A stretch of 64,000 nt of DNA from Callorhinchus milii (taxonomy: Eukaryota): positions 62,001 through 126,000 of the forward strand of contig NW_024704842.1 of assembly GCF_018977255.1 (NCBI RefSeq). Direction: 5' to 3'. This document shows, piece after piece, positions 1 through 64,000 of this stretch. The notes below the pieces were generated by a model. That model had not been told where the DNA came from. It saw nothing but the letters and a program-made list of their open reading frames with translations, and made no database searches. Position 1 is the stretch's first letter; each line of letters opens with the position of its first letter. A program made the position numbers and the translations under genes.

Positions 1-3000
1 CACGTCACAAGCCCCACAATGTCACAGCCCCACAGGATCAGCCACCCACCCACGGTACAGAGACGCCTCAGAGGACAGTCCCTCCACAGAGCACCCAACC
101 CGACACAGCGCGATGGATGGACAGCCGAACTCCAAACGTACAGCACCCTACCAGTCACAGTCCATTCCCAGGGCACAGTCCCCAACTGTCACAACCCCAT
201 TCCGACACAGGCATCTCCCGGAAACAGCTGCTGCCCCAGAGCACAGCTGCCATCCAAGGTACAGCCTCCCCAACGTGCACAGCCTCCTCCAGGGCAAAAG
301 CCCTCCACGCCGTTTTGCTCAAACCCCTTGTATCCTTACTCATCCTGTGTACAACAACCCTTTGCTCACCCAACCTGTTTACACACCCATCGGTTTACAC
401 CTTTGTGTTCCCACCCATACTCACCCCATACTCCCCGCGTATGCACAAACCCCAGGTGCTCCCCGTCTATTCGTAACACCCCCGCGCTCCCCATGTTCTT
501 TATCCAAAATTTTGCTCGTGATCCACTGTGCTCTTCACTCCGGTTGTCATCCTCTACTTGTGCTCACCATCTATTATTACGCCCTGTGCTAATCATGTGC
601 GCTCCCTCCCTCTGTTCCTCCCATTCTGATACCTCCATGTGCTCCCCGATGTGCTCAGACCCCTGAGCTCAAAACCTCGGTGCTCAACACCTCTGGCCAA
701 ATTCTCCCAATATGCTATCCCCAGAAACGCGTCCATTTTACACCCCGTGTTTAACCAAACCAGAGTGATCACCACCTTCCCTGTGCTCATCCACTCCTCT
801 GCTCAGCTCACGAGACTCACATCTTCGTCCTAAACCCGCTTGTTTTCCTCACGTGCTAAACCCAAATCATTCTCATTCCGTGTGCTTAAACCCCCTTTGC
901 TCGACACACCTGTTCTCAACGCATGTGTTACCCTTCATGTGCTCAGCCCTTTGTGCTCACTGATACTCAACTCAACCCTCCGTACTCACCCCATTGTGCT
1001 CATCCCCGAAAGTGCTCACACCATTTGCTCACCCCTTGTGCTCCACCCCTGTGATGTCCAATGTGCTTACCGACCCTGTGTTCAACCAAATCCTGTACTC
1101 AAATCCCCGGTGTTTACCTCTACTGTGCTCATTACAAGCCCCGTGGTCACCACCGGGCCCAACGCGCATCCACCGTATGCTAATCCCTCCTCTATGCTCA
1201 CTCCTACTGTACTCAGCCCATTGTTTTCTAACCCCATGTTGCACCCCTTTGTGCTAACCACGTCCCAACTGTTCTCACCTAACTCCGAGCGCTCAATGCT
1301 CCTGTGCTGACCCCAAATATGTTCAACTCCTATGCTACACCTCTATCTACTTAGTCCCTGTGCTCACCCACCCTGCACACTCCCCCCTATACTCTGCCCC
1401 TTGTAGTCGTCCCCTGTGCTCAGCCGCCTGTGCTCAACACTGCCCACAAACAGTGCTCACCCCACCAAACGACCCACTCGGAAAACGACCTGATGATGAT
1501 CGACAGATTTGTTTAACTAAGCAGATAACGCAGACAACATAAGTTTGCGACCTGCATTTATGTCCCTAGGGCAATGAGCGTGAACCCACTCCTTCCCACC
1601 AACCCGTCCACACCAGATTTAATAATAATACACTGACATATTGCGGGTTACAAACTTTTATCGGAATTTCCCTAATTCTAATTCCTAATGAGACATTGAA
1701 ATTCATCAGACAATGAATTAATTACCTGAGCAGATGACGCCGGCATCAGAGGAGTGTGACCAATAATAGTGACGCCAGGTCGCTGCGGAACAATATCTTA
1801 GAGCATACTCACTCCCTTTGCACCGAACATTATACGTTATAATGTGACCAGAGCCCATCCCAAAGTGAGCGTCTCCTGAGGCTGACAGCGCGGCTCCACA
1901 GCCCAACTCCTTACACACCACAGCCGCGTCCAGCATATCCCAACCAGAGTCACCAGAGCCAGAGCCATCCACTGTGCCCCATTGTCCATCGTGGTAAACC
2001 TCCACTGTCCCGGCACATCGGCTGCCGCCATTCACCAGCCTCACACTCTCTGTAAAACACCATACGCAACATTGAGAGTCCGTTTCGTTTTGACTTCCAG
2101 TCACTCAGGATAATACAATATAATGTACATGTACAGAAAATCTGTCACATTGGGAGGATGTTTGGCGTTAAAAAAATACAACAACAATAATAATCATTGT
2201 ATTGGTTGCAGTGTTTGCTGGCTGTACACGACCCAGGTGTCACCATAAGAGTAACAGGTTATTGCAGTACCAGCTGTACATGTTGCAGCTCCGTTTGCAG
2301 ATAAAGGATAGTGATATTATACTTTATCTTATTATGCTCTACATTATTATACTGATATTGGATTATTTTACATCATATTGGACTGTTATACTTTATATTA
2401 AACTATTCTAGTTGGTATTAGAATACTATACTCTATGTTAGATTATTAAACTTTATATTTAGATTTACGGTCAGGGCACAATTTTACACAAGTTTCCTCT
2501 ATCCACATGTTTCTGTTTATCTAGCAGTCAGTGGGAACCCAGCAGTCAATTGGCGTTTCTTTTCTGGGGATAAGAATCCCTTAAAAAAAATGTAATTTGG
2601 TCACTCAATCCATGAATCTTTGTGAGACACCACTGTGTGCGATTGGCTGCCGTATATCTCCAGCAAAGCAAGCAGCTGTTTCATATTGCAGTATATTCTG
2701 TGAAGCATTTTGGGACCCGATAAGGCTCTAAGACAAATCCATGGATTATTATTATTATTATCATAGTTTATATTAGATTACTACAATACGTATTTCATTA
2801 TTAAACGTTGTATTATATATTTTATTCTTCTACTTTATATACGATAGGAGATTCCACCCAAAATATGGCCATGGTTTACTGCTTTGTTACTTTATACATT
2901 AGTGTACATCCCTCAGAGCAGACTCGCTCACTCTGTACTGAACACCATACTTCAGAATGAAGCTTGGTCGATTTGGAAGGTATTCAAAAGCTAACTGGAC

Positions 3001-5104
3001 ATGGAGAAGGAATGGGCAAGGCACAGGGGTTTAGGAGCAGTAATAATATTCCCACAGCAACATTTGATTGTTAGATTGTGTCACTAACCTGCAGATTCCA
3101 CAGACTTTCTCTCCAGAAGTATTACTGTACAAGGGAAAGAAAGATCAAGGCAGGAATTATTAATAAAATAATTCACTCAAAAATCTGCCGTCACATAATC
3201 GTTCCTTGACTACAGGCAGCCGCTCAAGTTCGCCATCAAAAAGATCATGAGTGGGGGAGCGAACACCAGCGCAAATACAATCGGGAAAAAGCGGACAGGG
3301 ATTGGGATTATTGTAGAGCGCTCCAGTGGGGGAGCGAACACCATCACAGACACAATGGAGAGAGCGCACAATAGGACTGAACAAAGATAACTTTCACAGA
3401 CTGACAAGCACACGGTTGGGCTGAACGGCATTTTCTGCGAAAGAAAAAAACACAAATTACTGCAGATGCTGGATATCAGACAACAAAAACAAAAGTCGTT
3501 GGGCACATTCAGCAGTTGAGGCAGCAGATCATACGAAGGTTAGAGGAAACGAAACGTTGACTGTCTTTCTTTTCTCCTTAGACGTTGCCTGACATGCAGA
3601 GTGTTCCAAGCGACTTCTGATTTTTGTTTTCTGAGCAAGGGCCGTTTGTGTTTCTGTTTCTCTTTCGAGGCTTGGAGTAGAAGCGATTTGCTGACCACTC
3701 ACAAACTGAGAAATATATGTTTAACAGACAGAGCAGATTGTGTCTCTCTTTCTGTATGAAGTGTGCTTACTGGCTGTTGTTTTTCCTGGTAGCTCCTGTC
3801 CCGTTTCCCAACAATAACAACTTGCATTTTGGCATCTTGCATTTATAAAGCAATACATATGCGTTAATGAGGGAAAGCATAGAAATGACTTTCTCTCCTC
3901 ACTGTCCCCTTTCTTCTTTCTTAGCTTTTGCACTCGACCCTCCCGCCTCTCCAAAACCAACAAAAAATTAAGGAGCCTGGAGGGCAAAGACAACTAAGGT
4001 GATCGGACGCACGTTCAAAGGGAAGAGTGTTCAGATTTATGTTAAAGGAAGCAAGGAAAGGTTGAGAGCGTGGGACTGCAGAATGTATTCCCATTGCATG
4101 GTGAGAGAGTGGCTAAATGCTCGCCCGTCAATGTGGGGCTGTGAGGTGGGAGACATGAAGGAGGGGTGAGTGAGGACATGGCGGGCTTTCAAGGTGAGTA
4201 ACAGGATCGTGAACTGTATCCAAGGATGGGGATGATACGGTCACAGAGACTGGTGGAGGAGATGACACCAGCTGCAGGTTTCTGGGTGATCTGCAGCCGA
4301 CACAGGGAGTATTTAGTCAGGCGGACAAGCAGAGGGAATGCGTACAGAATCGTGGATCTTATAAAAGCATGTTATGGAAGCATGTATGAGGGTTCCGGCA
4401 GCCTGCCGTGTGAAACAGTGGCGGGCCGGTTAATATTGCGGAAATGGGGGAAGGCAGAGCGGGTTTGGGATACAAAGAATATTTGAGGATCAAAAAAGAC
4501 GCCTCTCACTCTTTTCTCCTTTCTAACTCTCTGGCTGGCACGACTCTCCGAATGGGATGTAATCACAAATAATAATTCTTGCATTTGATATAGCGCTTTG
4601 ATGTCTTCGAGACATGTCTAACGTGAATTCACCGTATATTTGTGGGCGAAGTGCGGTTGGCAATTGCACATAGCCGTGTCCTGCAAACATTCGGTGATTG
4701 AAAATGAGCAATAAAGTATTGTTTTGTTTAGGAGAGATTATTATGAGGCGCATAGTGTAGAATTTGCCCAACGGATCGCCCTGCCTGGAAAAGGACCAAA
4801 GTGTCTCGCTTGCAAGGCGATTGCTCTAACCACAGAGCGACAGAACCCCACTTTACGGTGCATTCCCACAAATATTCGAGCATTGAAACGGTACTCACCG
4901 AAAATAAGAAACAATGATTCCATTTCGAGAATGAGGAGGAGCTCGAGTGAAGTACGGAACCTAGCGTTTGTGTCCGACGGGGAGGGATCTCTGCAGAATT
5001 AAATCACACGGAGTAATTCTCAGGAGAAGCTTTTGACAGTGTCACCCTGCTCTGTGATCACCAAACATCCACTTCTCTGTTACACTTACATCGAAAGCTG
5101 TTGT
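1..5104 (+). repeat. Segmental duplication arm, paralogous to 58827-64000
   Basis: Colinear near-identity throughout, visible as duplicated ORFs (19..666 vs 58821..59441, 113..592 vs 58939..59418, 4741..4923 vs 63630..63812); offset about 58.8 kb. Confidence 0.95.
1726..4923 (-). CDS. Paralogous SRCR-Ig receptor gene (copy A), 5' part only: exons 4923-4899, 3124-3089, 2049-1726 (SRCR1); continues off the left edge
   Basis: Same three exons, sizes (25/36/324 nt) and splice sites as copy B; open frame MESLFLIFVILLERKSVESAESVRLVNGG...DAGVICS. Confidence 0.85.
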
Positions 5105-6569: not shown

Positions 6570-9500
6570 CATATACAGACCAGATCAATTTAAGGCGTAT
6601 GCAAGGGTCAATATTGGATATTTTGTAAAAGGCAAAAGATGATGTGTAGTTGAACCACTGTCATGGTGTTAACTTTGCAACTTTACCGGATATGAAGCAC
6701 AAACCACGCAGCACCTCCCAGCGAAAAGATCTCAAACATTTAACTGAAAAAGGAAAAAACTACTAAACGGAACAACACAATTTCTTTAGCGGTGTTTTGT
6801 ATCTTTATTTCTCTGGACAGTAAACTAGTCTGAAGTCTCAAAGCTACCCTACTTGCTGGTCCCTACAGTTCTATAATGCACAATATATGCTTAATTTAGA
6901 GTTCTCAGCCCTGCTGTCTTGTCAGCTTTTGAGATATTAGAATCAGATAAGGAAGCCAGTCTCCACTCTGCAACACCTCGTTTGACCACTTGCACTGCCA
7001 ATAGTTCTGTCTTTCAAGCTGTAAGTTTAATACAATATAATTCAACTGACATTTCCATAGCGACCTTCACTTCAGAGGTGCTGCTGTTTGTGAAAATTAA
7101 TGTAATTCATGTGAAGTCTGATGGTAACATTGCTCACAACCTCAGTAGCACTCACAAACATTAGTTATCTCACACACTCTCTCACACAATCTCACACTGT
7201 GTAGATCACACTCTCAGTCTCAGTCTCTCTATCTCCATCCGTGTCTCTGAAACTCCGAGTCTCCCTCCAATGTTACTTCCTCAGTACACTCTCAGCCTCA
7301 TTCTCCCTATCTCCATCTGTGTCTCTGAAACTCTGAGTCTCCCTCCATCTGTTACTCTCTAAATATCTATCACACACACATTGTGTCTCTCACACTCCCA
7401 GTCTCTCTCTGTCTGCGTCTCTCATCAGTCTCTGAAACACACACAATGTGACTCATACTCTGTCTCTCTCTCTCACACGCCCATCTCAATATCTCTCTGT
7501 ATCTCTCATACTCTCACTCACTCTCCCATATTTTCCCTCACACTATCAGTCCGTCTTACAAAATGTGTCTATCTGAACCTTACTCTCTCTATATATCCCC
7601 TCAGCCTCTCTCTCTCTGTCCCCAAACTTAGTCTCCAAGATGAGAGGGTAAATTGAGGTTCAATATGTGCAGTGTTGAAGACAAATGTTAAAGGTCCCGA
7701 GACACTATTTGGAAAAGAATAAGAAATGTCTCCTTATGTTAAATTCCAGCTCAAATTAAGCCATATGAAAATGAGACATGGTGTCAATTGTCAAAAGCTG
7801 ATGTGTAGCTGAACCACTGCCATGGTGTTAGCACAGCAACTTTACCGGATATTAAGCACGAACCACAGGATATCTCCCAGCAAAGAGGGCTCAAACATTT
7901 AACTGGAAAATGATTAAAAAAATAAACGGAACAGCAGCATTTTTTCGCTGTGTTTTGTATCTGTATTTTTCTGGAGAGTAAACTCGTCTGATATCTCAAA
8001 TGTGCCCAACTAGCTCGTCCCCACAGCTCCATAATACACAATATTCGCTTAATTGAGAGTTCTCAGCCCTGCTGTATTGACGGCATTTGAGACCATTACT
8101 ATCACATAAGAAATCCAGTCTCCACTATGTAACACCTCCGTTGACCGCTTAGGAAGCCTATATTTCTGTCTTTCCAGCTGCAAGTTTAATACAATATATT
8201 ACAAATTACATTCGCGTGGCTCCTTTCACTTAGGGAGTTCAGCTTTTTGTGCAAATTAATGTAATTCATGTGAAATCTTATGGTCACATTGCTCACATTC
8301 TGTCTCTCTCACACACAACTGTGTATCTCACGCACTCTCTCACACTCTGAAACACTGTGCAGCTCACATTGTCAGTCCCTCTATGTCCACACTCTCAATC
8401 TCCCTCCATCTGTTTCGTTCAAATTTACTGACACACACATCTCTCACATTTCCTCTCACAATTTCTTTCTCTACCTCCCAATCTCACTCACTCTCTGTAT
8501 CTCTCACACTATCTCTCTCTCTATCTCTATGTGTCTTTCACACTACCAGTCTGTCTTTCAAATTTTGTGTCTCAGAATCTTAGTCTCTCTCTCTCTCTCT
8601 CTCCGACTCTCTATTTTAGACTCTTAGATTAGAAGATAAATTCAGGTTCAGTTTGTGCTGTATCGAAGACAAATAGTAAAGGTATGGAGATGCCATTGGG
8701 AAATCGAAGTGTATTTCTCCAGATGTTAGGTTCCAGGCGAGCTCAACTTAATGTGTAAGGAAGTGTTAATATTGGAAACAGTGTCAAATAACAAAGGCTG
8801 GTGTGTGGCTGAAACACTTTCGTGGTATTTGCTTAGCATCTTTACCGGACATAAATCACAACCACACAACAAAAAGTGCTAAAATGTTTAATTGCAAATT
8901 GAAAATACAACTAAACAGAGCAGCAGATTTTTTTTAACGGAGTTTTGACTCGAAACTTCTCCGGACAGTAAACTCGATTGAAATCTCAATAATGCGTTTG
9001 AATAATAATAACAATAATAATAGCAATAATATTATGTGCATTTCATGTAACGCCTCTTCACGTCGTCGAGACATTTCAGAGACATATTCAATATTTCAGA
9101 CAAAACGTTATTCAGAATCAAAGTTCATTTGCGCCAGAGAATGAGAAGGTGGCACTTGGAAGGCAATATTTTAATCAGTAGAATAAGCACAACAAATGAG
9201 CAACTCTTTCCTTTCTACACCACGAACATTCCCTGAGCAAAAACAGTTTTTTTCCACTTCCAACATATTGATCGCCTCAATCCATTCCTCATATCCACAG
9301 CAGCCAAAATGCTCATGCATGCCTTCATAAATTACCGGCTGGACTAAATCCTGCTCGCTGGTCTCTCCAGCTCCAACATACACAAAATGTAATTGAAACA
9401 AATCTCAGCTGCCCGTTTTTGACCAGTTTTAAAACGGAGAGAATCTACAACTGGGCCACAGAGCATGAGAGAGTTGGTTTGTGTCTCAGAGCAAAATCCT

Positions 9501-11530
9501 GCAAACATAGAAAGTAAAGATAAGAGAGTTGCATTTTAATATCCAGAGCAGCTCAATTCAAGCTGCATGAAATGGATACTATTGGACATGTTGTCAAATG
9601 GAAAAAGCTGATGTATAGCTGAACCTCTGTCATGGTGTTAGCTTAGCAGAGGTACCGGATATCAAGCACAAACCGCACAAAACGTCCTACAAAAAGTGCT
9701 CAAACATTCAAATGCAAAACGGAAAGTGACTAAACAGAAATACAGAATTTCTTCAGCGGAATTTTTCTCTTTATGTCTTTGGACAGCAAACACACTTAGA
9801 ATCACAAATCTGCTTTTTAGCAACAGTGGTAACCATTGCATTTGCTTCAAGACTTCATCGAGAAGTTTCAGAGAAATATTCTATATTTCATACACGATGT
9901 TTTTCGGAATGAAAGTGCACTTATGCCAGAAAATGAAAAGGTAGCACATCAAACGCACAATTTTGATCAGAAAAATTTGGAAAACGGGTCAGCATTAGCA
10001 TTGTTTTCTTCCCCACATTCATTGCTAATCAGACCACTTTTTTCCACCTTTGCCACATTACCTGTCCCAATCCACACATCACATTCACAGCAGCCGAAAC
10101 ACTCACTGCCGACTGGAAGATTCCGTTGACCTTCTTTCTCGTCTCGTCACCAACACAATACACATTATTCGATTAGTTCAGAGTTCCCCAGACCTGCTGC
10201 CTTGTCTGCTTTTACAATCATTACAAACATTACAATCAGATAAGGAAGCTGCTCTCCAGCCTGCAAAACATCGGTTGACCGCAGTTGGAGCTAATATTTC
10301 TATATTTCAATGTGCAAGTTTAATAAACTATAAAAAAATTACATTTGTGTCGCGCTTTCACGTCGGAAGATTAGTTTTTTGTGCAAATTAGTGTAATTCA
10401 TTTGAAATTTGATGGTAGCATTGCTCACACTTCCAGTCTCTCTCACACACAAACACTTGACTCTCACACACTCTCTCACAATCTGATGCAGTGTGTCGCT
10501 CAAACTCTCAGTCTGTCTATTTCCATATGTGTCTCTGACACTCTCAGTCTCCCTCCATATGTTTCTCTCAAAGTCTGTATCACACACACACACCTTATCT
10601 CCCAAAGTCTCAGTCTCTCTCCATCTGTGTCTCTCAATTTCTCTGTCAAATACAATGTGCCTCTCTGTCACTCTCCCAATCTCCCTCTCCCTCTGTATCT
10701 CTGACACTACCACTCTCAATCTCCCCTTATGCGTCTCTCACACGGTAAGCCTCTCGCAAATTTAGTCGCACTCGCTCTCACACAAATTTATCGTCTGCTT
10801 ATCATGGGCTTTAAAATGAGAGGTACAATTGACCTTTATTTGTGTTGTGTTGAAGACAAGTGTTAAGAAGCCGAGACGTTATCAGGAAGTGAGAAGGGAA
10901 TTTCTCCAATTGTTATATTCCAGAGCAGCTAAATTTAAGTTGTACGAAAGGGTTAATAATGAACATGCTTTCAAATGGCAAAAGCTGATGCATAGCTGAA
11001 CCACTTTCATGATGTTAGCTGAGAAGCTTCTCTCACATTCTGCATCTCTCTCTCACACTCTCAAATGTCTCGCTCACCTTTTGTCTCTCTGAAGCTCTCT
11101 CTCTCTTTCTCTCTCTCTCTCTCTGTATCTCTTACATTATCTTTCTCTCTTACGTCCATTTTCTCTCACATTCTTAGTCTCTCTTTCTCTCTCTTTCTCG
11201 ATGTGATCTAAGACGCTGCGATAAACTCAGGTCCAGTTTATACCGTGTTCAGGACAGACCTTAAAGATCCAGTGATGCTATTTGGGAAAAAGAAGGGATT
11301 TTCTCCTGAGTCCAGATTAGCTCAATATTGTACATAGTATGAAACGGTAATGGGTGATATGTAGCTGAACTCTGTCAAGTTGTCAACTCAACAGCATTAC
11401 CGGATATAAAGCACAAACCACACAAACACCTCATGCGAAAAGGGCTCAAATATTTAACTGTAAAAGCGAGAAAAACATCTCAATTGAACAGCAGAAAACT
11501 GTATCGGGATGTTGTCTCTACATTTCTCTT
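6570..11530. repeat. Five to six diverged tandem copies of an unidentified module of about 0.9-1.2 kb, separated by CT/CA tracts
   Basis: The core AAAAGCTGATGTGTAGCTGAACCACTGTCATGGTGTT..TTACCGGATAT.AAGCACAAACCAC..AAAGGGCTCAAACATTTAACTG..CTCTGGACAGTAAA recurs near 6640, 7790, 8790, 9600, 10980 and 11350. Confidence 0.8.
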
Positions 11531-12094
11531 GATAGAATCCCGCATTAATCTTCCAATTTGCTCTTTAACAATAACAGTAATCTTTGCTTTGGATTTGGCG
11601 CCTTATCATGTCTTTTAGAAGTCTCAATGTGCTTCACGTGTTGTACTGTAAATTAATTGACTGTGTGTTTTCACGAGCGCTATATCAAATTCAAGGATTA
11701 TCATTATTATTTTAAAAACTCATCGTATTGATTCAGGAATTCACTGGGGGTACAGAGTTTTTTTGATACTGTATTATTTAGCAGATGATATAAATATTTG
11801 GTTCGTATTTATTATGGTTGTATATAGTCCATTGTGTTGTATGTACTATACAACATCAGGTTCCTCCTTTGTAAAGCCCTGGAACGTTGCCCAATGTGGA
11901 GTGCGCTTTAAAAACGCCACTTGTTTTATTTATTTATGCATAACAATAACCAAATTAATATAACAAGAATTATAAGAAGAAGAATAGCAACGAATACATC
12001 GCCCTCGTTCCACACTGGGCACCGTATCAGTGCGTAATAGTGACGGACACCAACTCCGAGTCGGGGGAATAATAACAACATTAATCATAATATC

Positions 12095-12470: not shown

Positions 12471-12479
12471 GTATCATAC

Positions 12480-22325: not shown

Positions 22326-22419
22326 CACGAATGGCGGCACATTGTAGCCTTTCGCTCTCTCGCAACCACACACATAGAGCCCAACCCTCAGCATTGGAGG
22401 CACTTTATAACTCACTGAC

Positions 22420-49240: not shown

Positions 49241-49283
<43 letters not shown>

Positions 49284-52200: not shown

Positions 52201-55200
52201 CTGGCTCATTCTCATCAGGTTGAGGAGCAAATCCGCCACTGGGAGCCGGATTATTTCTACGTTGGCTTTAAAAATACAAGTCAGCGTGAGCATCTTGTTC
52301 GTATGCTGCGGGACAAGAAGGGATAGTCTACACGATCGTGGTCAATGTGTGAGGTAGTCGGGTAAGTAACAGCTGTTGTGCAAGAGCAAGATCTGGGGTC
52401 CGCCCAAACTTGTCGCACGGCAAAACACACCGCGAAGTGACGGATATCAGGTCATCAGTGGCGCTTTCCTCTGGTGATAGCAGAGAGAGTTTACAGCCCA
52501 GATATGCTGTGCAGGGATGGCTCGGGAGTTTGGGTTTGGAAACTTTTTTATCGCGGGGATGGTTGCAGCCTGGTTCAAGCAATCCAACTGAGAGCAGGAG
52601 ATAACGTGGACTTATGATCGGTGATATAAAGAGTGACTGGAACAGAAGCTGCTGTAAAAGGTCAGCAGACAAATAGATTCCTGTGTGAGATTATAACCAA
52701 ATCTTACCGCGCACAGTGATTCCCACTCGCTCGCTCGCTATTGATGTAAACACTCGTCCGTCTATTTGTGTAGTATATTTACACGTGTAGTTTGCTGCAC
52801 TGATCTCCGATAGGATGAATGTTGCCGTGTTGTTATTCTCTGGAGCTGCTTGTGATATGATAAACGCATCATCTCTGTACAGAGAGAAATTGCTGCCAGG
52901 ATAATTCCCAGAACATGAGATCTCAGCGCTTTCCCCTCTCACAAACACCCGGGAATCTGGCTCCAGCGAAATTTTGGCTTTCTGGTGCGGATCTGGAATT
53001 CAAACACAGTGAAGACCATCTCACAAACATTCGCTCTGTGTATAGACACGGCACAGGTAATAGCAAAAAGGACCATTTGCTTCTTCCCAGCGTGGTGAAG
53101 GTGTCTGGAAGAGGTGAAGGTTTTGAGGGGCAGTTTCAGGGCAAACTCCAGCAAGTGTTTCTTTACACAGAGGGAGGGGGCACAACGACTGACATCGGAG
53201 TGGCCACGGAGGGCAGTGAGGCCGGGCAACTAAGTAACAGCTCCAGCATGAGACGGGAGAACGGAAATTTAATCTGGACAGCTCGTGTGATTTTCAGCCG
53301 TGTTTTAAACAACAGCGTAGGATGTCAACCAACGGATCAAACTTAATCCTGGAGCATCGACTTCACACAGAGGGAAGTGGCATTGTGGAACTCGCTAACT
53401 GAAGCAAGGATTAAATCAGACAGTCTAGATACATTCCAGACCTAATCACACCTCCACATGATGAGAGGAACATAAGGGATTTTGAAGGCAGTGGGTGTGT
53501 GCGATGCAATGAGCGACAGGGGAATAGAAGGCTTTGGAAGGTATCGAGAGTTTGGGGAGAGTAAAAGACGTTGTGGGAGTAACATAGTTTGTGGAAGGCA
53601 ATGAGTTTGTGCGAGGGAATCAGGGTTTGGGAGCGAGGGTGGAAAAGAGGTTGAGGGAGGCAGCGAATGTGAGGAAGTTTGTGTGTTGTTGGAAGTGAGG
53701 GAGTCAATTTGATGGAGGAAGGGAGCAATGCAGATAATCTCGTGTAAAGAGGGTGTAAAATAAGATATCTGTTTGGGGAGGACAATTATCCAGGGCTGTA
53801 GCGAGAGAGTTGGGGATTGGGATTTAATCGGCTAGCTGCTTCAGAAGAGCTGGTATAGGGACGATTGAGAAAAATTGCATCCTTCGGTGCTGTATGATTC
53901 CATGATTAAATAAAGTAAGTGAGGTAGGGGCAGAGGCGTGATATGATCGCAGTGAATGGATACTAGGAGACAGTGACTGCACATTGATCAGAGAATTCAA
54001 GATCTCGCTCTTACCCCACAAAGAGATTCCCACTCGTTCGCTCTCTGGTGATGTGAGCTCGCGTGCGACTATATGTTTAGCGTATTTACACGAATAATTC
54101 CCTGCACTGATCTCCGATGGGGCGAATGTTGCCGTGTTGTTTTTCTCAGGAGCCCACTGTGATGAGATCAACTTCCCTTCTCTGTATAAAGAGAAATTAC
54201 TGCCTGGATAATTTCCAGAACATGAGATCTCAGCGCTTTCCCCTCTCACAAACACCCGTGAATCTGGCTTCAGGGAAATGGTGGGTTTCTGGAGCGGTTC
54301 TGGAATTAAAGTAAATATAATCTCACAAACACTCACTTCGTAACATGAAAACAGTTCAGTTCAGACGAAAACTGTCTATTTGCTTATTTCTCAGCCTGAA
54401 GGAATCACCATGAAGACTGGGAGAGGCAAGGGTTAAGCGACAGTTTCAGGACAGGCCCGAGCATATGTTTCTTTAAACCTAGGGAGGGGTCAACGGCTGG
54501 CACAGGGGTGGCCATGGAGGGCAGTGAGGCCGTGGCCTGATGAACCACAAAGTTATAGCCAGGGACGTGTGACCGGGAATACAGACAAAAACTCTCAACT
54601 GACCTTCACACGTATTTAAATAACAGGATACGATCACATTCAGGGGATCAAACAGAAAATGTAGGAGCGACGACTTCACGCAGTGGAGTGAGATGGTGGG
54701 AATGATTGACTGAAGCGGGATTGGAATCAGACAGTATAAACACATTCAAGAGGCAGCAAGACTTTCATAGAAGGGAGAGGAGATTAAAAGGTGTGGGAGG
54801 GAGTGAGGCTGTGGGAGAGATTCAGTGTTTGGGAGGAATAGAGGGTGGGGATGGAAGGAATAGAATGTACGTGCGGATGAGGAATAGACGTAATGAAGGG
54901 TTGTGGAATAGGAAGTGTGAAATGAATTAAGGGGGAAAGTGAGGAATTGAAGGAGACTTGTGTCATTGAGCGTTTGGTACATGTGTTAGGATGGGTTGGG
55001 TTGCGGGATGGGGGACAGTAGTAGTTGGAGGGTGGATCTGTGATCAAGGCTACTATAAACCAGCGGCAACGAACGGCCATTTAACAGATTCGTGAGAGAA
55101 ACACAAACAGGTTATTATGTAAAATCTTACTCAGATCTTACCCCACAAATAGATTCCCACTCGTTCGCTCTCTGGGGATGTGAACTTTCGTCCGTCTACA

Positions 55201-58200
55201 TGTGTAGTATATTTACACGTGTAAATTCCTGCACTGAAATCCGATAGGGCGAAATTTGCCGTTTGGATGTTTTCCGGAGCTGTCCGTGATGTGAAAATCT
55301 TGCCGTCTATGTATAAAGAGAATATGCTGCCTGGATAATTCCCAGAACATGAGATCTGAGCGCTTTCCCCTCTCACAAAGAACGGGGAATCTGGCTTCAG
55401 GGAAATGATGGCTTTCTGAAGTGGATCTGAAATTAAAACACAGTAAAGATAATCTCACAAACACTCACTCTGATCTGATCTGTGACAGTGAAGATCAGTG
55501 TCGACAATAAGCCCAGCCTCACCCTCTGAGACTGTTTCTCTCTGAGGTTTAATACGAGGCAGAAATGTGGGTGGTTCCGACTACGTGTCTTGATTTGACG
55601 CTGCAATTCTTCCGTATTGAATTTTTTTTTGATGTTTGGGTATGTCTTTCTGTGAGCGAAGAGTCAGTGTTAGCTCGGAGTCAGTGTGAGCTCTGGATCA
55701 GTGTGAGCTCGCGATCAGTGTGAGCTCGGGGTCAGTGTGAGCTCGGGGTCAGTGTGAGCTCGGGGTCAGTGTGAGCTCGGGAACACTGAAAGCTGGAGTT
55801 GCTTATAGCCTTGACTGCCTGTTCAGGTAGTGGTAACAAATCTCATGACGATATTCAATAACCGAAGGGATTATTTTCCTGTTGCCTTTGCCAACAATCC
55901 CCAAATTAAGTTTGATTGGCCCTACACTCCACCCATATCAATGGCACGTTGTTGCAGTTGTGGTCTATACCTGAACAGAATATGCCACCGTCCTGTCCGT
56001 GTCCGCAGTCAGGCCGACCAACCACAGGCCCCGATCCTTCTCCAAAGCGAGCGTCACTTGAGACTGATACAGCAAATCCACACCCCAAATATTTACAAAT
56101 ATATCCTGCCATCTCCATGTTCAGCGTCTCGCCACAAACTGTTCTCCAAGTGTCATAGTTGTACAGCTCAACTCTCCCCACACACCGGCTGTCTCCATTC
56201 ACCAGTTTGGGTGGGTTACCTCCTGCCAAGTACATACAATACAATATCCACAGCAACAACTTCAAGCGTATGTGCAATTAACACAATCTGTACCATCACA
56301 AACAGCGGACGTGTGACCCTGGGTTAGCAGAGATGGTGTGACACACGTATAGCAGAGGAGGTGGGAACCTGGGATAGTAGATGCTGTGTGACAATGGGTT
56401 AGCCGAGGATGTGTCACATTGGGTTAGGAGGGAAGCTGTGACACGGGGTAAGCCTGAGAATACATTGGAATATACACCAGAGAAACATTCGGCCCAACTG
56501 GTCTATGACGTTAATCACTCCCTGATTTCAGTTTTCCGNTTTTTCTCCTCGCCCTGCGAATACCTCGCGTTTTAATACCACCCCACTTGTGCTCAATCCC
56601 CTGCGCTCTCTCCCTTTGCTGATCTCCCTTTGGCTCAACACACTTGTACTCAACAACCTCGTGCTCTTACACAACTTGCTCTTACCCACCTGTCCTCAAC
56701 CCCACTGTGCCTACCGTTCCTGTTTACATACTCTCTGCTCACCCTCCTGTGAAAACCGCCCCGTAAACATCCCTTTGATTACCCCGCCCCCCGCCCATGT
56801 GTGATAACTTCCCTACTCCACAATGTGCGGAATCCCATCTGCTCATTCACACTTTACCCACTATCGCCAGTACACTGACCTCCTATGCTCAACTCCCACG
56901 CCCCACCCCCACCCCACCCTGTGCCACTCCTGGTTCTGCCCCCTGTCTTCTGCCCCAGTGTTCACCAATGCGCTCATCCCATGCTCAAATTAACTTCCTC
57001 AAACCGCTGTGATCACTCCCAATGCATCCCGCTCCCCGGTGCTCTGCATATACCCCAGTGTTCATACCCTGTGCACAGCCCCAGTATACTCACCTCCCTC
57101 TCTACTCATCGCCTGTACTCACTTTTCTTCAGCTCCTCTCTCCCTCTGTTCACCCTGCAATACTCTCCCCCTCCCCTGTTCATACACAGCCTGTGCTCTG
57201 TCTTCTTGTGATGACTGAAATATTTACCTGAACAGATGACGCCGGCATCATAGGAGTGTAGCCAGGAATAGCCACCACCCCAGGGCTGTGACCGACAACC
57301 CCTCAGTGTAGACTCACTCCCTCTGCACCGGACACTCCACGTCACAACGGGACCTGAGCCTTCGCCAAAGTGAGCGTCTCCTGATGCTGACAGCGCGGCT
57401 CCACAGCCCAACTCCTTACACACCACAGCCGCGTCCAACATATCCCAACCATAGCCATCCACTGTGCCCCACTGTCCATCGTGGTAAACCTCCACTCTCC
57501 CGGCACACGGGCTACCGCCATTCACCAGCCTCAAACGATCTGCCAAAAGGAAATAAAATCTGCCACACAATCACTGTAAGACATCACGCAGAATATTGAG
57601 CGTAATCCAAGATAATACTTTACAAGGTGCATGTCGCATTGCGAGGGTCTCTGGACGGTAAACAATACAACAGCAATAATAATCATTATAATGGTTTCAA
57701 TGATTGTTGGCTGCATACAGTCCAAAACCCGGGTATCATCAATAATATTAACAATTCATTCCGCCGCTAGATATACCCGTTGCAGCTGCCTTTGGAACAG
57801 AAGGATAGAGCTTTTATATTATTATACTAAATATTATATCATTGTACTTTATATAAGATTAATATAATTTATATAAAGATAGGAGATTCCCCCAAAATAT
57901 GGCAGTGGTTTATTGCTTTGTTACAGAATACATTAATGCGCATGTGTTACTGAAAGAATAGTGTGTGATTTTCTCTGTCGCTAATTCATTGCGGAATATT
58001 ATCCACACATCACATTTTGGGGCTTCATTAAATTTATTTTAAGTCTAGCTCATCAAGGATAGGCATTGCTCTGGAGTACGTCCACGACTCTAAAACAACA
58101 AGATCTTCCCGAAGAGGTAAAATCGTTCTACATCAATTGTATATTGCGCTCTGGCAGATACAAAGATGCAGATATTGTTGTTTTATTATTGCATTAGTAG

Positions 58201-61200
58201 CTCGCTTTTTGTTGTTTGAATATATGTGTGTGTGTATGGGGGTGTGGGGGAGTCGCGGACTCATACAATGCACCATCACACACAACACGAACGAACCCAG
58301 GCACAGACACTAGCACAACCCCAACTCCGGCCAAAGCACCTCGCCCCGAGGACACAGCCCTCACCCACAGCGCCAGAGCACAGCCACACCCCAAGGCACA
58401 GACTCCACCGACAGTGCACAGTCGCAACAATACAAAACAGAAGACATCCCCTATGGCACAGCAACCGTCCACAGGGAATAATCAAACCCCCAGGTTACAC
58501 AGACCCCACACAAGGAAGCCCCACCCCAGGTAAAGGCAGATCCAGACAAAGACCGCTCTCCCTGGTACAAACCCCTCCCAGGTAACAGCAACTACTCCCA
58601 CCTCCGATAGCTGCCTCTCAGGCTCATCGGTGCGCTGCTTCGGCACAGTGCTCTCTTGCCCTGCCCTACCAACGAGGGCACAGCTTCCCCACTAGGTACA
58701 GCGAACTTCAAACCCTGCAGAAACCCCACACCTGCCCCCCGGTAGAGCCCTCACTGCCAAAACAAACCCAGGGTCCACCGACCACTTCCCACTGTACAGG
58801 CCCCACCACAGGCTCATCTCTTGACCCAGGTCACAAGCCCCACAATGTCACAGCCCCACAGGATCAGCCACCCACCCACGGTACAGAGACGCCTCAGAGG
58901 ACAGTCCCTCCACAGAGCACCCAACCCGACACAGCGCGATGGATGGACAGCCGAACTCCAAACGTACAGCACCCTACCAGTCACAGTCCATTCCCAGGGC
59001 ACAGTCCCCAACTGTCACAACCCCATTCCGACACAGGCATCTCCCGGAAACAGCTGCTGCCCCAGAGCACAGCTGCCATCCAAGGTACAGCCTCCCCAAC
59101 GTGCACAGCCTCCTCCAGGGCAAAAGCCCTCCACGCCGTTTTGCTCAAACCCCTTGTATCCTTACTCATCCTGTGTACAACAACCCTTTGCTCACCCAAC
59201 CTGTATACACACCCATCGGTTTACACATTTGTGTTCCCATCCATACTCACCCCATAATCCCCGCGTATGCACAAACCCCAGGTGCTCCCCGCCTATTCGT
59301 ACCACCCCCGCGCTCCCCATGTTCTTTATCCAAAAATTTGCTCGTGATCCACTGTGCTCTTCACTCTGGTTGTCATCCTCTACTTGTGCTCACCATCTAT
59401 TATTACGCCCTGGGCTAATCATGTGCGCTCCCTTCCTCTGATCCTCCCATTCTGATACCTCCATGTGCTCCCCGATGTGCTCAGACCCCTGAGCTCAAAA
59501 CCTCGGTGCTCAACACCTCTGGCCAAATTCTCCCAATATGCTATCCCCAGAAAAGCGTCCATTTTACACCCCGTGTTTAACCAAACCAGAGTGATCACCA
59601 CCTTCGCTGTGCTCATCCACTCCTCTGCTCAGCTCACGATACTCACATCGTCGTCCTAAACCCCCTTGTTTTCCTCACGTGCTAAACCCAAATCATTCTC
59701 ATCCCGTGTGCTTAACCCCCCTTTGCTCGACACACCTGTTCTTAACGCGTGTGTTACCCTTCATTGCTCAGCCCTTTGTGCTCACTCATACTCCACTCAA
59801 CCCTCCGTACTCACCCCTTGTGCTCATCCCCGCACGTGCTTACACCATTTGCTCACCCCTTTTGCTCCACCCCTATAATGTCCACTGTGCTTACCGACCC
59901 TGTGTTCAACCAAATCCTGTACTCAAATCCCCGGTGTTTACCTCTACTGTGCTCATTACAAGCCCCGTGGTCACCACCGGGCCCAACGCTCATCCACCGT
60001 ATGCTAATCCCTCCTCTATGCTCACTCCTACTGTACTCAGCCCATTGTTTTCTAACCCCTTGTTGCCCCCCTTTGTGCTAACTACGTCCCAACTGTTCTC
60101 ACCTAACTCCGAGCGCTCAATGCTCCCTGTGCTGACCCCAAATATGTTCAACTCCTATGCTACACCTCCATCTACTTAGTCCCTGTGCTCACCCACCCTG
60201 CACCCTCCCCCTTAAACTCTGCCCCTTGTAGTCGTCCCCTGTGCTCAGCCGCCTGTGCTCAACACTGCCCACAACCAGTGCTCACCCCACCAAACGAACC
60301 ACTCGGAAAACGAACTGATGATGATCGACAGATTTGTTTAACTAAGCAGATGACGCAGACAACATAAGTGTGCGACCCGCATTTATGTCCCTAGGGCAAT
60401 GAGCGTGAATCCACTCCTTCCCACCAACCTCTCCACACCAGATTTAATAATAATACACTGACATATTGCGGGTTACAAACTTTTACCAGAATCTCCCTAA
60501 TTCTAATTCCTATTGAGACATTGAAAAATCATCAGACAATGAATTAATTACCTGAGCAGATGACGCCAGCATCAGAGGAGTGTGACGAATAATAGTGACG
60601 CCAGTTCTCTGAGGAACAATATCTTAGAGCATACTCACTCCCTTTGCACCGAACATTATACGTTATTATGTGACCAGAGCCCATCCCAAAGTGAGCGTCT
60701 CCTGAGGCTGACAGCGCGGCTCCACAGCCCAACTCCTTACACACCACAGCCGCGTCCAGCATATCCCAACCAGAGTCACCAGAGCCATAGCCATCCACTG
60801 TGCCCCACTGTCCATCGTGATGAACCTCCACTGTCCCGGCACATCGGCTGCCGCCATTCACCAGCCTCACACTCCCTGTAAAACACCAGACGCAACATTG
60901 AGAGTCCGTTTCGTCTTTGACTTCCAGTCACTCAGGATAATACAATATGATGAACATGTACAGAAAATCTGTCACATTGGGAGGATGTTTGGCGTTAAAA
61001 AAATACAACAACAATAATAATCATTCTACTGGTTGCAGTGTTTGCTGGCTGTACACGACCCAGGTGTCACCATAAGAGTAACAGGTTATTGGAGTACCAG
61101 CTTTACATGTTGCAGCTCCGTTTGCAGATAAAGGATAGTGATATTATACTTTATATTATTATGCTCTACATTACTATACTGATATTCGATTATTTTACAT

Positions 61201-63812
61201 CATACTGGACTGTTATACTTTATATTATACTATTCTAGTTGATATTAGAATACTATACTCTATGTTAGATTCTTAAACTTTGTATTTATATTTACGGTCA
61301 GGACACAATTTTACACAAGTTTCCTCTATCCACATGTTTCTGTTTATCTAGCAGTCAGTGGTAACCCAGCAGTCAATTGGCGTTTCTTTTCTTGGGATAA
61401 CAATCCCTTAAAAAAAATGTAATTTGGTCACTCAATCCATGAATCTTTGTGAGACACCACTGTGTGCGATTGGCTGCCGTATATCTTCAGCAAAGCAAGC
61501 AGCTGTTTCATATGGCAGTATATTCTGTGAAGCCTTTTGGGACCCGATAAGGCTCTTAAACAAATCCAAGGATTATTATTATTATTATCATAGTTTATAT
61601 TAGATCACTACAATTCGTACTTCATTATTAAACGTTGTATTATATATTTTATTCTTCTACTTTATATACGATAGGAGATTACACCCAAAATATGGCCATG
61701 GTTTACTGCTTTGTTACAGTGTACATTAGTGTAGATCCCTCAGAGCAGACTCGCTCCCTCTGTACTGAACACCATACTTCAGAATGAAGTTTGGTCGATT
61801 TGGAAGGTATTCAAAAGCTAACTGAACATGGAGAAGGAATGGGCAAGGCACAGGGATTGAGGAGCAGTAATAATATTCCCACAGCAACATTTGATTGTTA
61901 GATTGTGTCACTAACCTGCAGATTCCACAGACTTTCTCTCCAGTAGTATTACTGTACACGGGAAAGAAAGATCAAGGCAGGAATTATTAATAAAATAATT
62001 CACCGAAAAATCTGCCGTCACATAATCGTTCCTTGACTACAGGCAGCCACTCAAGTTCGCCGTCAAAAAGATCATGAGTAGGTTAGCGAACACCAGCGCA
62101 AATACAATCGGGAAAAAGCGGACAGGGATTGGGATTATTGTAGAGCGCTCCAGTGGGGGAGCGAACACCATCACAGACACCATGGGGAGAGCGCACAATA
62201 GGACTGAACAAAGATAACTTTCACAGACTGACAAGCACACGGTTGGGCTGAACGGCATTTTCTGCGAAAGAAAAAAACAGAAATTACTGGAGATGCTGGA
62301 TATCAGACAACAAAAACAAAAGTCGTTGGGCACATTCAGCAGTTGAGGCAGCAGATCTAACGAGCGGTCGTGGAAACGAAACGTTGACTCTCTTTCCTTT
62401 CTCCTTAGATGTTGCCTGACATGCTGAGTGTTCCCAGAGACTTCTGATAATTATTTTCTGAGCAAGGGCCGTTTGTGTTTCTGTTTCTCTTTCGAGGCTT
62501 GGGGAAGAAGCGATTTGCTGACCACTCGCAACCTGAGAAATTTATGTTTAACAGACTGAGCAGATTGTGTCTCTCTTTCTGTATGAAGTGTGCTTACTGG
62601 CTGTTATTTTTCCTGGTAGCTTCTGTCTCGTTACCCAAAAATAACAACCTGCATTTTGACGACTTGCATTTATACTGCAATAAATCTACTTTAATGAGGG
62701 TAAGCATAGAAATGACTTTCTCTCCTCACTGTCCCCTTTCTCCTTTCTCTGCTTTTGCACTCGACCTTCCCGCCTCTCCAAAACCAACAAAAAATTAAGG
62801 ATCACTAAGGTGATCGAACGCACGGTCAAAGGGAAGAGTGTTCAGATTTATCTTGAAGGAAGCAAGGAAAGGGTGAGGTAGGTGGACTGCAGAATGTAGT
62901 CCTAATGGGTGGGTAGAGATTGGCTAAATGATCGCCCGTAAATGGTGGGGCTGTGAGGTGGGAGACATGAATCAGGCTGGAGTCCGCTGAGCTGAGGGAG
63001 CGGGTAGATTGGTAAGGCGTAGGAGGTCGCAGATGTAGGGGTGTGTGAGGACATGGAGGGCTTTCAATGTGAGTAACATTATCTTGAACTGTATCCAAGG
63101 ATGGGGATGATATGGTCACAGAGACTGGTGGAGGAGATGACACTAGCTGCAGGTTTCTGGGTGATCTGCAGTCGATAGAGGGAGTATTTAGGCAGACGGA
63201 CAAGCAGTGGGTTTGCGCACAGAATCCTGGATCTCATAAAAGAATGTTATAAAAGCATGTATAAGTGTTCCGGCAGCCTGCGGTGTGAGACATTGGTGGA
63301 CACCGTTAATGTTGCGGGAATGGGGGAAGATAGAGCGGGTTATGACACGAGTTTGGGATACATAGGATAGTTGAGGATCAAAAAAGACGCCTTTCACTCC
63401 TCCCTCTTTTCCAACTCTCTGGATGGCACAACTCTCCGAATGGGTTGTAATCATAAATAATAATTCTTGCATTTGATATAGCGCTTTTCATGTCTTCGAG
63501 ACATGTCTAATTAGAATTCACCGTATATTTGTGGGCGAAGTGCGGTTGGCAATTGCACATAGCAGTGTCCTACAAACTGTCGGTGATTGAAAATGAGCAA
63601 TACAGCATTGTTTTGTTTAGGAGCGGTTATTATGAGGAGTATAGAGTAGAAATTGCCCAAGGGTTCGCCCTGCCTGGAAAAGGAAAAAAGTGTCTCGCTT
63701 GCAAGGCGATTGCTCTAACCACAGAGCTACAGAACCCCACTTTACGGTACATTCCCACAAATATTCGTGGATTGAAACGGTACTCACCGAAAATAAGAAA
63801 CAATGATTCCAT
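47321..63812 (-). CDS. 13-exon type I membrane receptor gene, SRCR x3 - Ig(C2) x3 - TM - ITIM tail (copy B), 706 aa. Exons: 63812-63788, 61951-61916, 60875-60552, 57539-57228, 56222-55971, 55426-55142, 54299-54015, 52992-52708, 51832-51734, 50699-50672, 49925-49882, 48587-48547, 47425-47321
   Basis: All introns are GT-AG and phases join (1-1-1-1-1-1-1-1-1-2-1-0). The exons total 2121 nt = 707 codons with no internal stop. The product reads MESLFLIFVILLERKSVESA / SRCR x3 / Ig x3 / ANWTWKQITGLAAGIVAALMIIVLLLGISEYKKG / ...EPSNVTYATVRKVPRSVPSMNADIIYANL...GPIYATVRV*. Confidence 0.85.
48547..48587 (-). CDS. Receptor copy B, cytoplasmic exon (41 nt, (Y)ATVRKVPRSVPSM)
   Basis: TTCCGTTTGTTTCAG acceptor, GTGAGT donor; phase 1 to 0. 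Confidence 0.75.
49882..49925 (-). CDS. Receptor copy B, cytoplasmic exon (44 nt, NVPTGGGPEPSNVT)
   Basis: TGTTTTTTTTCGCAG acceptor, GTGAGT donor; phase 2 to 1; supplies the first base of the ITIM1 Tyr codon. Confidence 0.75.
50672..50699 (-). CDS. Receptor copy B, cytoplasmic micro-exon (28 nt, GKQKSSSGER)
   Basis: CCCTTTGCAATTACAG acceptor, GTGAGA donor; phase 1 to 2 fits both neighbouring exons. Confidence 0.7.
51734..51832 (-). CDS. Receptor copy B, transmembrane exon (99 nt)
   Basis: CATTTCCCTCTCTAG acceptor; NWTWKQITGLAAGIVAALMIIVLLLGISEYKK with an uncharged 22-aa hydrophobic stretch; donor GTAAGT. Not in the ORF track. Confidence 0.88.
52708..52992 (-). CDS. Receptor copy B, C2-type Ig domain 3 exon (285 nt)
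   Basis: DPHQKAKISLEPDSRVFVRGESAEISCSGNYPGSNFSLYRD...ANYTCKYTT...ASERVGITVR; GT-AG flanks, phase 1-1. Confidence 0.92.
54015..54299 (-). CDS. Receptor copy B, C2-type Ig domain 2 exon (285 nt)
   Basis: EPLQKPTISLKPDSRVFVRGESAEISCSGNYPGSNFSLYREG...GNYSCKY...SPESERVGISLW; GT-AG flanks, phase 1-1. Confidence 0.92.
55142..55426 (-). CDS. Receptor copy B, C2-type Ig domain 1 exon (285 nt)
   Basis: DPLQKAIISLKPDSPFFVRGESAQISCSGNYPGSIFSLY...GIYTCKYTT...SPESERVGIYLW; TTTAATTTCAG acceptor, GTAAGA donor. Confidence 0.92.
55665..55785. repeat. 17-bp tandem repeat TCAGTGTGAGCTCGGGG, about 6-7 units, in the SRCR3-Ig1 intron
   Basis: Direct inspection. Confidence 0.85.
55971..56222 (-). CDS. Receptor copy B, shortened SRCR domain 3 exon (252 nt)
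   Basis: PKLVNGDSRCVGRVELYNYDTWRTVCGE...ICKYLGCG...FGEGSGPVVGRPDCGHGQDGGIFCS; CTTGGCAG acceptor, GTATAG donor, phase 1-1. Confidence 0.88.
57228..57539 (-). CDS. Receptor copy B, SRCR domain 2 exon (312 nt)
   Basis: DRLRLVNGGSPCAGRVEVYHDGQWGTVDGYGWDMLDAAVVCKELGCG...DAGVICS; TTTTGGCAG acceptor, GTAAAT donor. Confidence 0.95.
60552..60875 (-). CDS. Receptor copy B, SRCR domain 1 exon (324 nt)
   Basis: VRLVNGGSRCAGTVEV..GQWGTV..WDMLDAAVVCKELGCG...VRCKGSE..LRYC...DAGVICS; TTTTACAG acceptor, GTAATT donor, phase 1-1. Confidence 0.95.
61916..61951 (-). CDS. Receptor copy B, 36-nt leader mini-exon 2 ((V)ILLERKSVESA)
   Basis: Polypyrimidine acceptor TCTTTCTTTCCCGTGTACAG, donor GTTAGT, phase 1-1; conserved at 3089-3124. 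Confidence 0.75.
63788..63812 (-). CDS. Receptor copy B, leader exon 1 (MESLFLIF)
   Basis: ATGGAATCATTGTTTCTTATTTTCG|GTGAGT, phase 1; conserved in the paralog at 4899-4923. Confidence 0.75.
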
Positions 63813-64000
63813 TTCGAGAGTGAGGAGGAGCTCGAGTCAAATACAGAACCTGGAGGATTGTGTTTGTGTCCGACGGGGAAGGATCTCTGCAGACTTAAAT
63901 CACACGGAGTAATTCTCAGGAGAAGCTTTTGACAGTGTCACCCTGCTCTGTGATCACCAAGCATCCACTTCTCTGTAACACTTGCATCGAAAGCTGTTGT

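Follow-up and report, generated by a model that had tools for sequence, protein, structure and literature searches.

SRCR-Ig-ITIM receptor genes co-duplicated with TCR-type V segments on an unplaced scaffold of Callorhinchus milii

The receptor genes and their family

The stretch of DNA considered here, the window, comprises 64,000 nucleotides of the chimaera Callorhinchus milii and corresponds to positions 62001-126000 of the unplaced scaffold MU249905.1 (168,031 bp; assembly GCA_018977255.1). The analysis also took in the flanks, 24.1 kb on the left and 36.7 kb on the right, and so covered about 125 kb of the scaffold; coordinates preceded by w follow window numbering, with negative values to the left of the window and values above 64000 to its right. 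Within this region lie three genes, all in the same orientation, for a membrane receptor that combines scavenger receptor cysteine-rich (SRCR) domains, immunoglobulin (Ig) domains, and tyrosine-based inhibitory motifs of immunoreceptors (ITIMs): R1 (w 4923..-14149), R2 (63812..47321, the copy that is complete inside the window), and R3 (w 90671..71838). Interleaved with them are variable (V) segments of T-cell receptor (TCR) type that carry recombination signal sequences (RSSs). The evidence supports tandem co-duplication of receptor and V segments, and this duplication extends past the window.

R2 consists of 13 exons with canonical AG/GT splice sites, which together form a 2121-nt open frame on the minus strand and encode 706 amino acids. 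A protein search gave 100% identity to C. milii XP_042201734. The protein runs from a signal peptide through three SRCR domains and three Ig domains of leukocyte receptor complex (LRC) type to an uncharged transmembrane (TM) segment and a tail with the motifs VTYATV, IIYANL, and PIYATV. Six-frame reading gave three SRCR and three Ig open reading frames (ORFs) on the minus strand at 52.7-60.9 kb, as well as a fourth SRCR frame at 1726-2049. A heuristic scan for signal peptides found no leader, and both leader exons were located only through paralogue protein models from the database, by which the four small cytoplasmic exons of R2 were likewise placed. In the seven ectodomain and TM exons the borders are AG/GT, each length is a multiple of three, and the phase is 1-1. 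The exons of R2 are these:

63788-63812, minus strand: exon 1, start codon at 63812
61916-61951, minus strand: exon 2, second part of the signal peptide
60552-60875, minus strand: SRCR-A exon, 324 nt, phase 1-1 (Pfam SRCR PF00530, E = 3.6e-26)
57228-57539, minus strand: SRCR-B exon, 312 nt (Pfam SRCR PF00530, E = 6.5e-29)
55971-56222, minus strand: SRCR-C exon, 252 nt, a short domain (PF00530, E = 2.2e-13, model positions 1-62 of 100 only)
55142-55426, minus strand: Ig1 exon, LRC-type C2 Ig domain
54015-54299, minus strand: Ig2 exon
52708-52992, minus strand: Ig3 exon
51734-51832, minus strand: transmembrane exon, ITGLAAGIVAALMIIVLLLGI, no charged residue
50672-50699, minus strand: cytoplasmic exon 1
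49882-49925, minus strand: cytoplasmic exon 2, whose last base is the first base of the VTYATV tyrosine codon
48547-48587, minus strand: cytoplasmic exon 3, which completes VTYATV
47321-47425, minus strand: last coding exon, with IIYANL, PIYATV, and the stop codon

The beginning of R1 lies at the left end of the window and the remainder of the gene to the left of it, down to w -14149:

4899-4923, minus strand: R1 exon 1, MESLFLIF, start codon at 4923
3089-3124, minus strand: R1 exon 2, remainder of the signal peptide, VILLERKSVESA, AG/GT borders
1726-2049, minus strand: R1 SRCR-A exon

All three genes have 13 exons with AG/GT sites, apart from one dead exon in R3 described below, and R1, like R2, is open over 706 amino acids. 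Several NCBI models of the locus differ from these genes. One NCBI isoform stops short because an exon junction falls within the tyrosine codon of VTYATV. LOC103172721 spans 71.6 kb, and its isoforms X1 and X3 join the ectodomain exons of R2 to the TM segment and tail of R1 (KHITG type), leaving out the 3' exons that belong to R2 as well as the five V segments of the window. Further, the first three exons of R2 are annotated as a separate 118-aa gene and the first five of R1 as a 337-aa 'SSC5D-like' gene. These joined and split models are probably artefacts of modelling near-identical paralogues.

Each SRCR domain is encoded by a single phase 1-1 exon, as is the rule for SRCR domains of group B, and the best matches in the Protein Data Bank (PDB) are CD163, CD5L, CD6, and DMBT1. 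The eight-cysteine pattern of that group is incomplete, however. Alignment to CD163 indicates that SRCR-A and SRCR-B lack the C2-C7 pair: WGTVC has become WGTVD with a five-residue insert (GYGSG) and C7 is replaced by Ser or Trp, with C1, C3, C4, C5, C6, and C8 retained. The SRCR-A exon of R1 shares this loss and the insert. SRCR-C retains C2 and is shortened to about 83 aa. The three Ig exons of R2 match Pfam Ig_2, Ig_3, and Ig_C19orf38, and their best PDB matches are PIR-B (2e-14), LILRB2 (1.7e-9), and KIR3DL1 (1e-8), with FCRL5, LILRB1, NKp46, OSCAR, and GPVI also found. In the tail, VTYATV and IIYANL fit the ITIM consensus (S/I/V/L)xYxx(I/V/L). The receptor thereby unites tandem C2 Ig domains related to those of LILR and KIR with an uncharged TM segment and at least one ITIM, the features expected of an LRC-type receptor. 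The SRCR-Ig-ITIM architecture that the first-pass annotation had read from this DNA is therefore borne out by Pfam and by the tail motifs, as is its report that the left copy of a repeat holds the first three exons of a second receptor gene, here R1.

R1, R2, and R3 are members of a large family of type I membrane proteins, specific to Callorhinchus, with a signal peptide, three group-B-like SRCR domains, two to four LRC-type Ig domains, an uncharged TM segment, and a tail that bears two canonical ITIMs and one ITIM-like motif. A word-indexed search with the Ig-TM-tail part (E <= 1e-5) returned 28 matches, all from C. milii or unnamed and distributed over many unplaced scaffolds; all family members seen lie on such scaffolds. 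Relatives within C. milii include forms with and without SRCR domains and also short-tailed forms (P0138). A full HMMER search added elasmobranch proteins, named 'IGSF1-like' or uncharacterised, with multiple Ig domains, 26-34% identity, and no SRCR domain. These, the closest elasmobranch relatives, are Ig-only, one of them (Heterodontus P0196) with ITIM-like tail motifs, and the locus of the closest sevengill-shark relative holds neither V segments nor SRCR exons. Three other C. milii scaffolds of the family (131 kb examined) carry several receptor genes and no V segment. One of these regions, MU249884.1 210238-286546, has at least three further family genes in both orientations, and its 76 kb are free of V segments; the model that NCBI gives there (878 aa) begins with a long low-complexity N-terminus that looks spurious. 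A TRIM17-like model of C. milii (P0146, on a 240,910-bp scaffold) combines an SRCR fragment, two family-type Ig domains, and PRY/SPRY, and represents a fused gene model or else one more mosaic within the SRCR-Ig family. Literature searches found no description of an SRCR-Ig-ITIM family or of the V-receptor arrangement.

V segments and their recombination signals

An RSS scan of the window gave 12 RSS-like matches, against 0.9 expected in shuffles at the same threshold. Five V segments were found, each with a perfect CACAGTG heptamer, a 23-bp spacer, and a nonamer, placed directly after codons for YYCA, YFCA, or YLCA; the heptamers stand at 31405 and 34071 on the minus strand and at 39129, 40861, and 42126 on the plus strand. 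The V segments, named for their positions, and an inverted duplication that includes two of them are as follows:

31367-31718, minus strand: V31k, open V exon with 23-RSS (CACAGTG, 23-bp spacer, ACAAAAACT)
34033-34359, minus strand: V34k, pseudogene, frameshifted by an 8-bp tandem duplication, with 23-RSS and a leader exon upstream
38850-39167, plus strand: V39k, inverted copy of V34k, pseudogene with a 1-bp deletion and Cys104 changed to Trp, with 23-RSS
40411-40899, plus strand: V40k, leader exon 40411-40468, V exon 40579-40860, 23-RSS 40861-40899
41813-42164, plus strand: V42k, open V exon with 23-RSS, inside the block duplicated with the receptor
34005-39194: inverted duplication, arms 34005-35299 and 37909-39194 (95.4% identity), with a 2.6-kb spacer that contains a 25-N gap and another N run

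Three of the five thus have open V exons and two are pseudogenes. V31k, V40k, and V42k combine the V-set residues Cys23, Trp41, and Cys104 with a heptamer, 23-bp spacer, and nonamer. Leader exons were recognised for V40k, V34k, and V39k, that of V40k being the one clear case; none that is valid was found for V31k and V42k within 450-650 bp (450 bp for V31k). A stretch resembling a tRNA-derived short interspersed element (SINE) lies upstream of V31k at about 31.95-32.1 kb, the expected leader position. V34k and V39k occupy the two arms of the inverted duplication and bear independent lesions. The 25-N gap marks the end of one arm and a GT-rich minisatellite that of the other, so that the inner borders of the duplication are undefined.

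Comparison with solved structures indicates what kind of V segment these are. For V40k all of the top 47 matches are TCR alpha chains or TCR constructs. The matches of V31k and V42k are to TCR alpha and V-delta-1; against VH, V31k does about equally well. A protein search with V42k returned only unnamed C. milii models that read through the germline sequence, so that no TCR chain was named. Outside the window, V segments lie to the left of R1 at w -22.8k, -21.6k, and -19.9k, with a fragment at -18.9k, and beside R3 at 69.5k (with an in-frame stop), with a fragment at 70.6k.

The 125 kb hold nine RSS-bearing V segments without a joining (J) or constant (C) element. No J-like element, defined by a 12- or 23-RSS and FGxG, was found in the 125 kb apart from a single match within an SRCR exon, which was rejected as chance. 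Likewise, no C-domain ORF was found there, and what a scan for the Ig-fold pattern picked up was confined to V segments, SRCR exons, and junk ORFs. V segments that lack both J and C would fit a translocon-type TCR array better than the Ig clusters of sharks.

Tandem duplication of receptors and V segments together

In a BLAST self-comparison of the window, positions 1-4159 and 58827-62971 are 95.2% identical over 4165 columns (E = 0), and 4162-5104 and 63037-64000 are 89.4% identical. The two copies are colinear and in the same orientation, as the first-pass annotation had observed. Each runs into a window end, and the window therefore cuts the repeat. The duplicated parts inside the window are:

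1-5104: left repeat copy, 5' end of R1 and upstream flank; homology goes on to w -20040 outside and to 8552 inside the window
58827-64000: right repeat copy, 5' end of R2 and upstream flank; homology goes on to w 67442
41669-64000: in-window part of duplicated unit 2 (V42k, R2, and upstream flank), colinear with unit 1 (w -20040..8552) and, from 46436 on, with unit 3

Over the whole region, block w -20040..8552 matches 41669..67442 at 90-97%, a homologous block between R1 and R2 of about 26-29 kb; block w -24149..13104 matches 68138..99897, with a 6.4-kb deletion in unit 3; and 46436..67442 matches 70962..95386. The colinear blocks that join units 1, 2, and 3 range from 88.6 to 97.4% identity and mostly fall at 93-97%. 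Homology upstream of R2 stops at w 67442, and the next homologous block, from 68138 onward, corresponds to the start of unit 1. A tandem segmental duplication is characterised by at least two colinear copies in the same orientation with homology spanning both V segment and receptor, and three such units are present here. Given that V-bearing and receptor-bearing blocks are about equally diverged (roughly 93-97% identity), the two were copied together. Homology runs through the whole of R1 and on to a copy of V42k at w -19890 with 97% amino acid identity, and the V pair at w -22.8/-21.6k is 97.3% identical in nucleotides to the pair at 69.5/70.6k. The co-amplification of receptor and V segments in tandem, proposed at first pass, is thus upheld. 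Nor does homology end just outside the window, the outcome that had been set as a refutation: complete R1 and R3 units flank R2, each beside V segments.

The units are not of one size. R1 and R2 are spaced at 58.83 kb and R2 and R3 at 27.1 kb, and the other units lack anything corresponding to about 33 kb of the window (8.5-41.7 kb), a stretch with repeats, satellites, fragments of long interspersed elements (LINEs), and four of the five V segments found in the window. The 58.8 kb that had been taken for the length of a uniform cassette is consequently the R1-R2 offset. Six RSS-bearing V segments had also been reported between the two repeat copies; there are five, and a sixth was not found in the window by tblastn with all V types or by the RSS scan. 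Save for five V segments instead of six and a spacing mistaken for a unit size, the earlier observation was largely right.

The receptor copies themselves have diverged in structure. The Ig2 exon region of R1 (w -7091..-5124) is a 94.7% copy of its Ig1 region. In R3, the Ig2 exon is dead (w 78446-78730): its acceptor reads TG instead of AG, two stops fall in frame, and the 616-aa NCBI model skips it. SRCR-B of R3 is 15 nt longer. Exons of the paralogues differ by about 2.5% at synonymous and non-synonymous sites alike, which puts dN/dS at about 1, on small counts.

Runs of N stand at six listed places in the window, among them runs between 25595 and 28912 (within a CT-rich simple-repeat array) and 35302-35326 (25 N, at the inner end of an inverted-repeat arm and about 0.75 kb from the V34k leader exon), and in addition at 36956-37090 (adjoining the GT-rich minisatellite) and, as a single N, at 56539 in the intron between SRCR-B and SRCR-C of R2. 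Window-to-record coordinates are linear across all of them, so their lengths are exact; the public record itself has N at the 25-N and 1-N runs alone, and the analysis drew on the window as masked and on the outside flanks. None of the N runs in the window touches an exon or a V segment, and continuity of reading frames across gaps is thus not at issue here. The flanks contain 31 further N at positions that were not placed.

Other features of the window are repetitive. LINE-type reverse-transcriptase fragments lie at 22411-24409 and 45315-46432 (Pfam RVT_1, E = 7e-21); they are 87% alike over 786 columns, and the latter is just 3' of R2. tRNA and Rfam scans gave only one tRNA-like SINE match, at 4776-4847 on the minus strand in intron 1 of R1 (Rfam tRNA, 31.5 bits). 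Between 14000 and 28500 strand asymmetry is very strong (GC skew to -0.8, AT skew -0.7), with degenerate C/A-rich short repeats and a CT array of more than 3 kb, and a 47-bp minisatellite occupies 12111-12472.

Interpretation and comparison with known systems

The arrangement is probably the product of recent tandem segmental duplication of a block holding V segments and an ITIM receptor, followed by local remodelling, with the receptor inhibitory by analogy and its linkage to V segments a matter of proximity. A block of roughly 26-37 kb would have been copied in tandem on MU249905.1 into at least three copies of one orientation, each bearing one to three V segments of TCR alpha/delta type, on the plus strand with the RSS toward the receptor's 3' end, and one minus-strand receptor. 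Unequal crossing-over is the most likely means of copying. Deletions, the inverted V duplication, exon-level conversion, and repeat insertions may later have remodelled the copies and set their spacing at 58.8 kb and 27 kb. The receptor, if judged by analogy with LILRB, PIR-B, KIR, and CD5, most likely dampens leukocyte activation through SH2 phosphatases after tyrosine phosphorylation, the ITIM mechanism being described in LILRB (PMC4825776). Generality of the V-receptor linkage is not supported, three other scaffolds of the family being V-free, and the linkage appears to be a by-product of proximity rather than functional coupling.

Several observations weigh against parts of this account. 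V40k is the sole V segment of the window (one of five) in which leader exon, open V exon, and RSS are all intact. In the tail, PIYATV has Pro at -2 and is neither a canonical ITIM nor an immunoreceptor tyrosine-based switch motif (ITSM). Relaxed constraint fits a dN/dS of about 1 among the paralogues as well as diversifying selection does. Finally, the scaffold is unplaced and one arm of the inverted repeat adjoins a real 25-N gap, and collapse or mis-joining is conceivable.

In light of the last point, the question arises whether the whole arrangement was made in assembly, with haplotigs or with collapsed or mis-joined paralogues stitched to V segments on a small scaffold. The unplaced state and short length of MU249905.1 (168,031 bp), the abundance of satellites and of LINE and SINE copies, the true gap beside the inverted-repeat arm, and the jump of NCBI's own gene model from R2 to R1 all lend this some weight. 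As an explanation of the whole it is nevertheless unlikely. Three copies are more than two haplotypes can explain, and they differ by about 5% and in copy-specific structure (the Ig2 conversion of R1, the Ig2 pseudoexon and the SRCR-B extension of 15 nt in R3, and the 6.4-kb deletion of unit 3). Haplotigs as the sole cause, a doubt raised at first pass, are consequently ruled out. The record has letters across the window except for the 25-N and 1-N runs, with linear coordinates, and the transitions from V segment to receptor (42.1k-47.3k and w -19.6k to -14.1k) fall within unbroken homologous blocks. A doubtful but possible alternative accepts the assembly and holds the V segments to be orphons, non-functional relics carried along by duplications of an LRC-like receptor region that has no relation to an active antigen-receptor locus. 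Of the five V segments in the window, two are frameshifted and in another two no leader is recognisable, the V at 69.5k has an in-frame stop and that at 70.6k is partial, and most of the receptor family is on V-free scaffolds. Against it stand the complete V40k, the open V exons of V31k and V42k and of their counterparts at w -22.8k and -19.9k to the left, and perfect heptamers in all; further, the lesions of V34k and V39k are independent and recent.

The opposite reading is that the two kinds of gene belong together: the family would sit within a working TRA/TRD V array and be co-regulated with it, or would serve as a T-cell co-receptor in the manner of WC1 or CD5. It is an improbable one. 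The interleaving holds across three units, the V segments are alpha/delta-like with 23-RSSs and no adjacent J or C, which fits a translocon-type TCR array and not shark Ig clusters, and the SRCR head resembles the CD5/CD6/WC1 class. Yet no diversity (D), J, or C element was found in these 125 kb of an unplaced scaffold, defects or missing leaders affect most V segments of the window, and neither the other scaffolds of the family nor the locus of the closest elasmobranch relative has V segments. Trypsinogen genes, an unrelated multigene family, sit within the TCR-beta locus (PMC7696796), a precedent because of which embedding need not mean function. There is accordingly only a small chance that a chimaera-specific, SRCR-headed, LRC-like inhibitory family is embedded in, and growing with, a functional TRA/TRD V array, in which case joining of a plus-strand V to downstream D/J would, through V(D)J deletion, remove receptor genes from the rearranged T-cell chromosome. 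Antigen-receptor V genes would then stand in physical linkage with innate receptors of LRC type in a jawed vertebrate that branched early. The present evidence establishes physical linkage on one unplaced scaffold, rather than a property of the TCR locus. With that scaffold unplaced and no J or C in 125 kb, the first-pass placement inside the TCR locus is not supported; TRA/TRD D, J, and C segments, whose location had been proposed as a check, were not found in the 125 kb read, and the idea of an ancestral linked immune complex gains nothing beyond physical adjacency.

Tandem co-duplication with remodelling, the preferred account, is of interest on two grounds. It offers a concrete and testable instance in which genes for receptors of innate type have expanded as a unit with rearranging V genes. 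Further, if the assembly is right, an early-branching jawed vertebrate possesses a fast-evolving inhibitory family in which an SRCR head of CD5/CD163 type is set on an LILR-type Ig stalk with ITIMs.

With CD5/CD6 and WC1/CD163 the receptor shares membrane-distal, group-B-like SRCR domains on single exons, a count of three as in CD5 and CD6, and tyrosine motifs in the tail; unlike them it has Ig domains between SRCR and membrane, no C2-C7 pair in SRCR-A and SRCR-B, and a shortened SRCR-C. WC1 itself has 6 or 11 SRCR domains and no Ig. The genes of WC1, CD5, and CD6 are not known to lie among TCR V segments. Membership in the WC1/CD163 class of gamma-delta co-receptors was rejected on architecture, three SRCR followed by three Ig domains as opposed to 6-11 SRCR domains only. 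Mouse FCRLS is likewise a mosaic of Ig and group B SRCR (PMC4016189), but it is secreted, its Ig domains are FcR-like, and it has one SRCR domain. The cyprinid 'DMBT1-like' proteins (P0112, P0016) place LRC-like Ig domains directly after an SRCR triplet, with similar exon-junction sequence, a TM segment, and tyrosine motifs; their Ig part is 26% identical to that of the C. milii receptor, whereas they repeat the module of three SRCR and Ig and bear motifs of DYxNV type instead of ITIMs. Common origin and convergence would each account for this likeness.

As for the interleaving, the trypsinogen genes of the TCR-beta locus are comparable in that an unrelated multigene family lies between TCR segments (PMC7696796); that locus, however, is placed, functional, and conserved between mouse and human, while the C. 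milii scaffold is unplaced and the genes embedded in it encode immune receptors. The nearest counterparts of the membrane-proximal half are the LRC inhibitory receptors (LILRB, PIR-B, KIR3DL), which have the same C2-type Ig domains, each on one phase-1 exon, uncharged TM segment, and spaced ITIMs, and which also form a fast-duplicating multigene family with short-tailed relatives. The differences are the three N-terminal SRCR domains and a low identity (E = 2e-14 at best). For sharks, a survey of 2014 reported no C2-only receptors of LRC-like kind (PMC4016189); the C. milii family bears on the older claim that bony fish alone gave rise to LRC-like C2 receptors.

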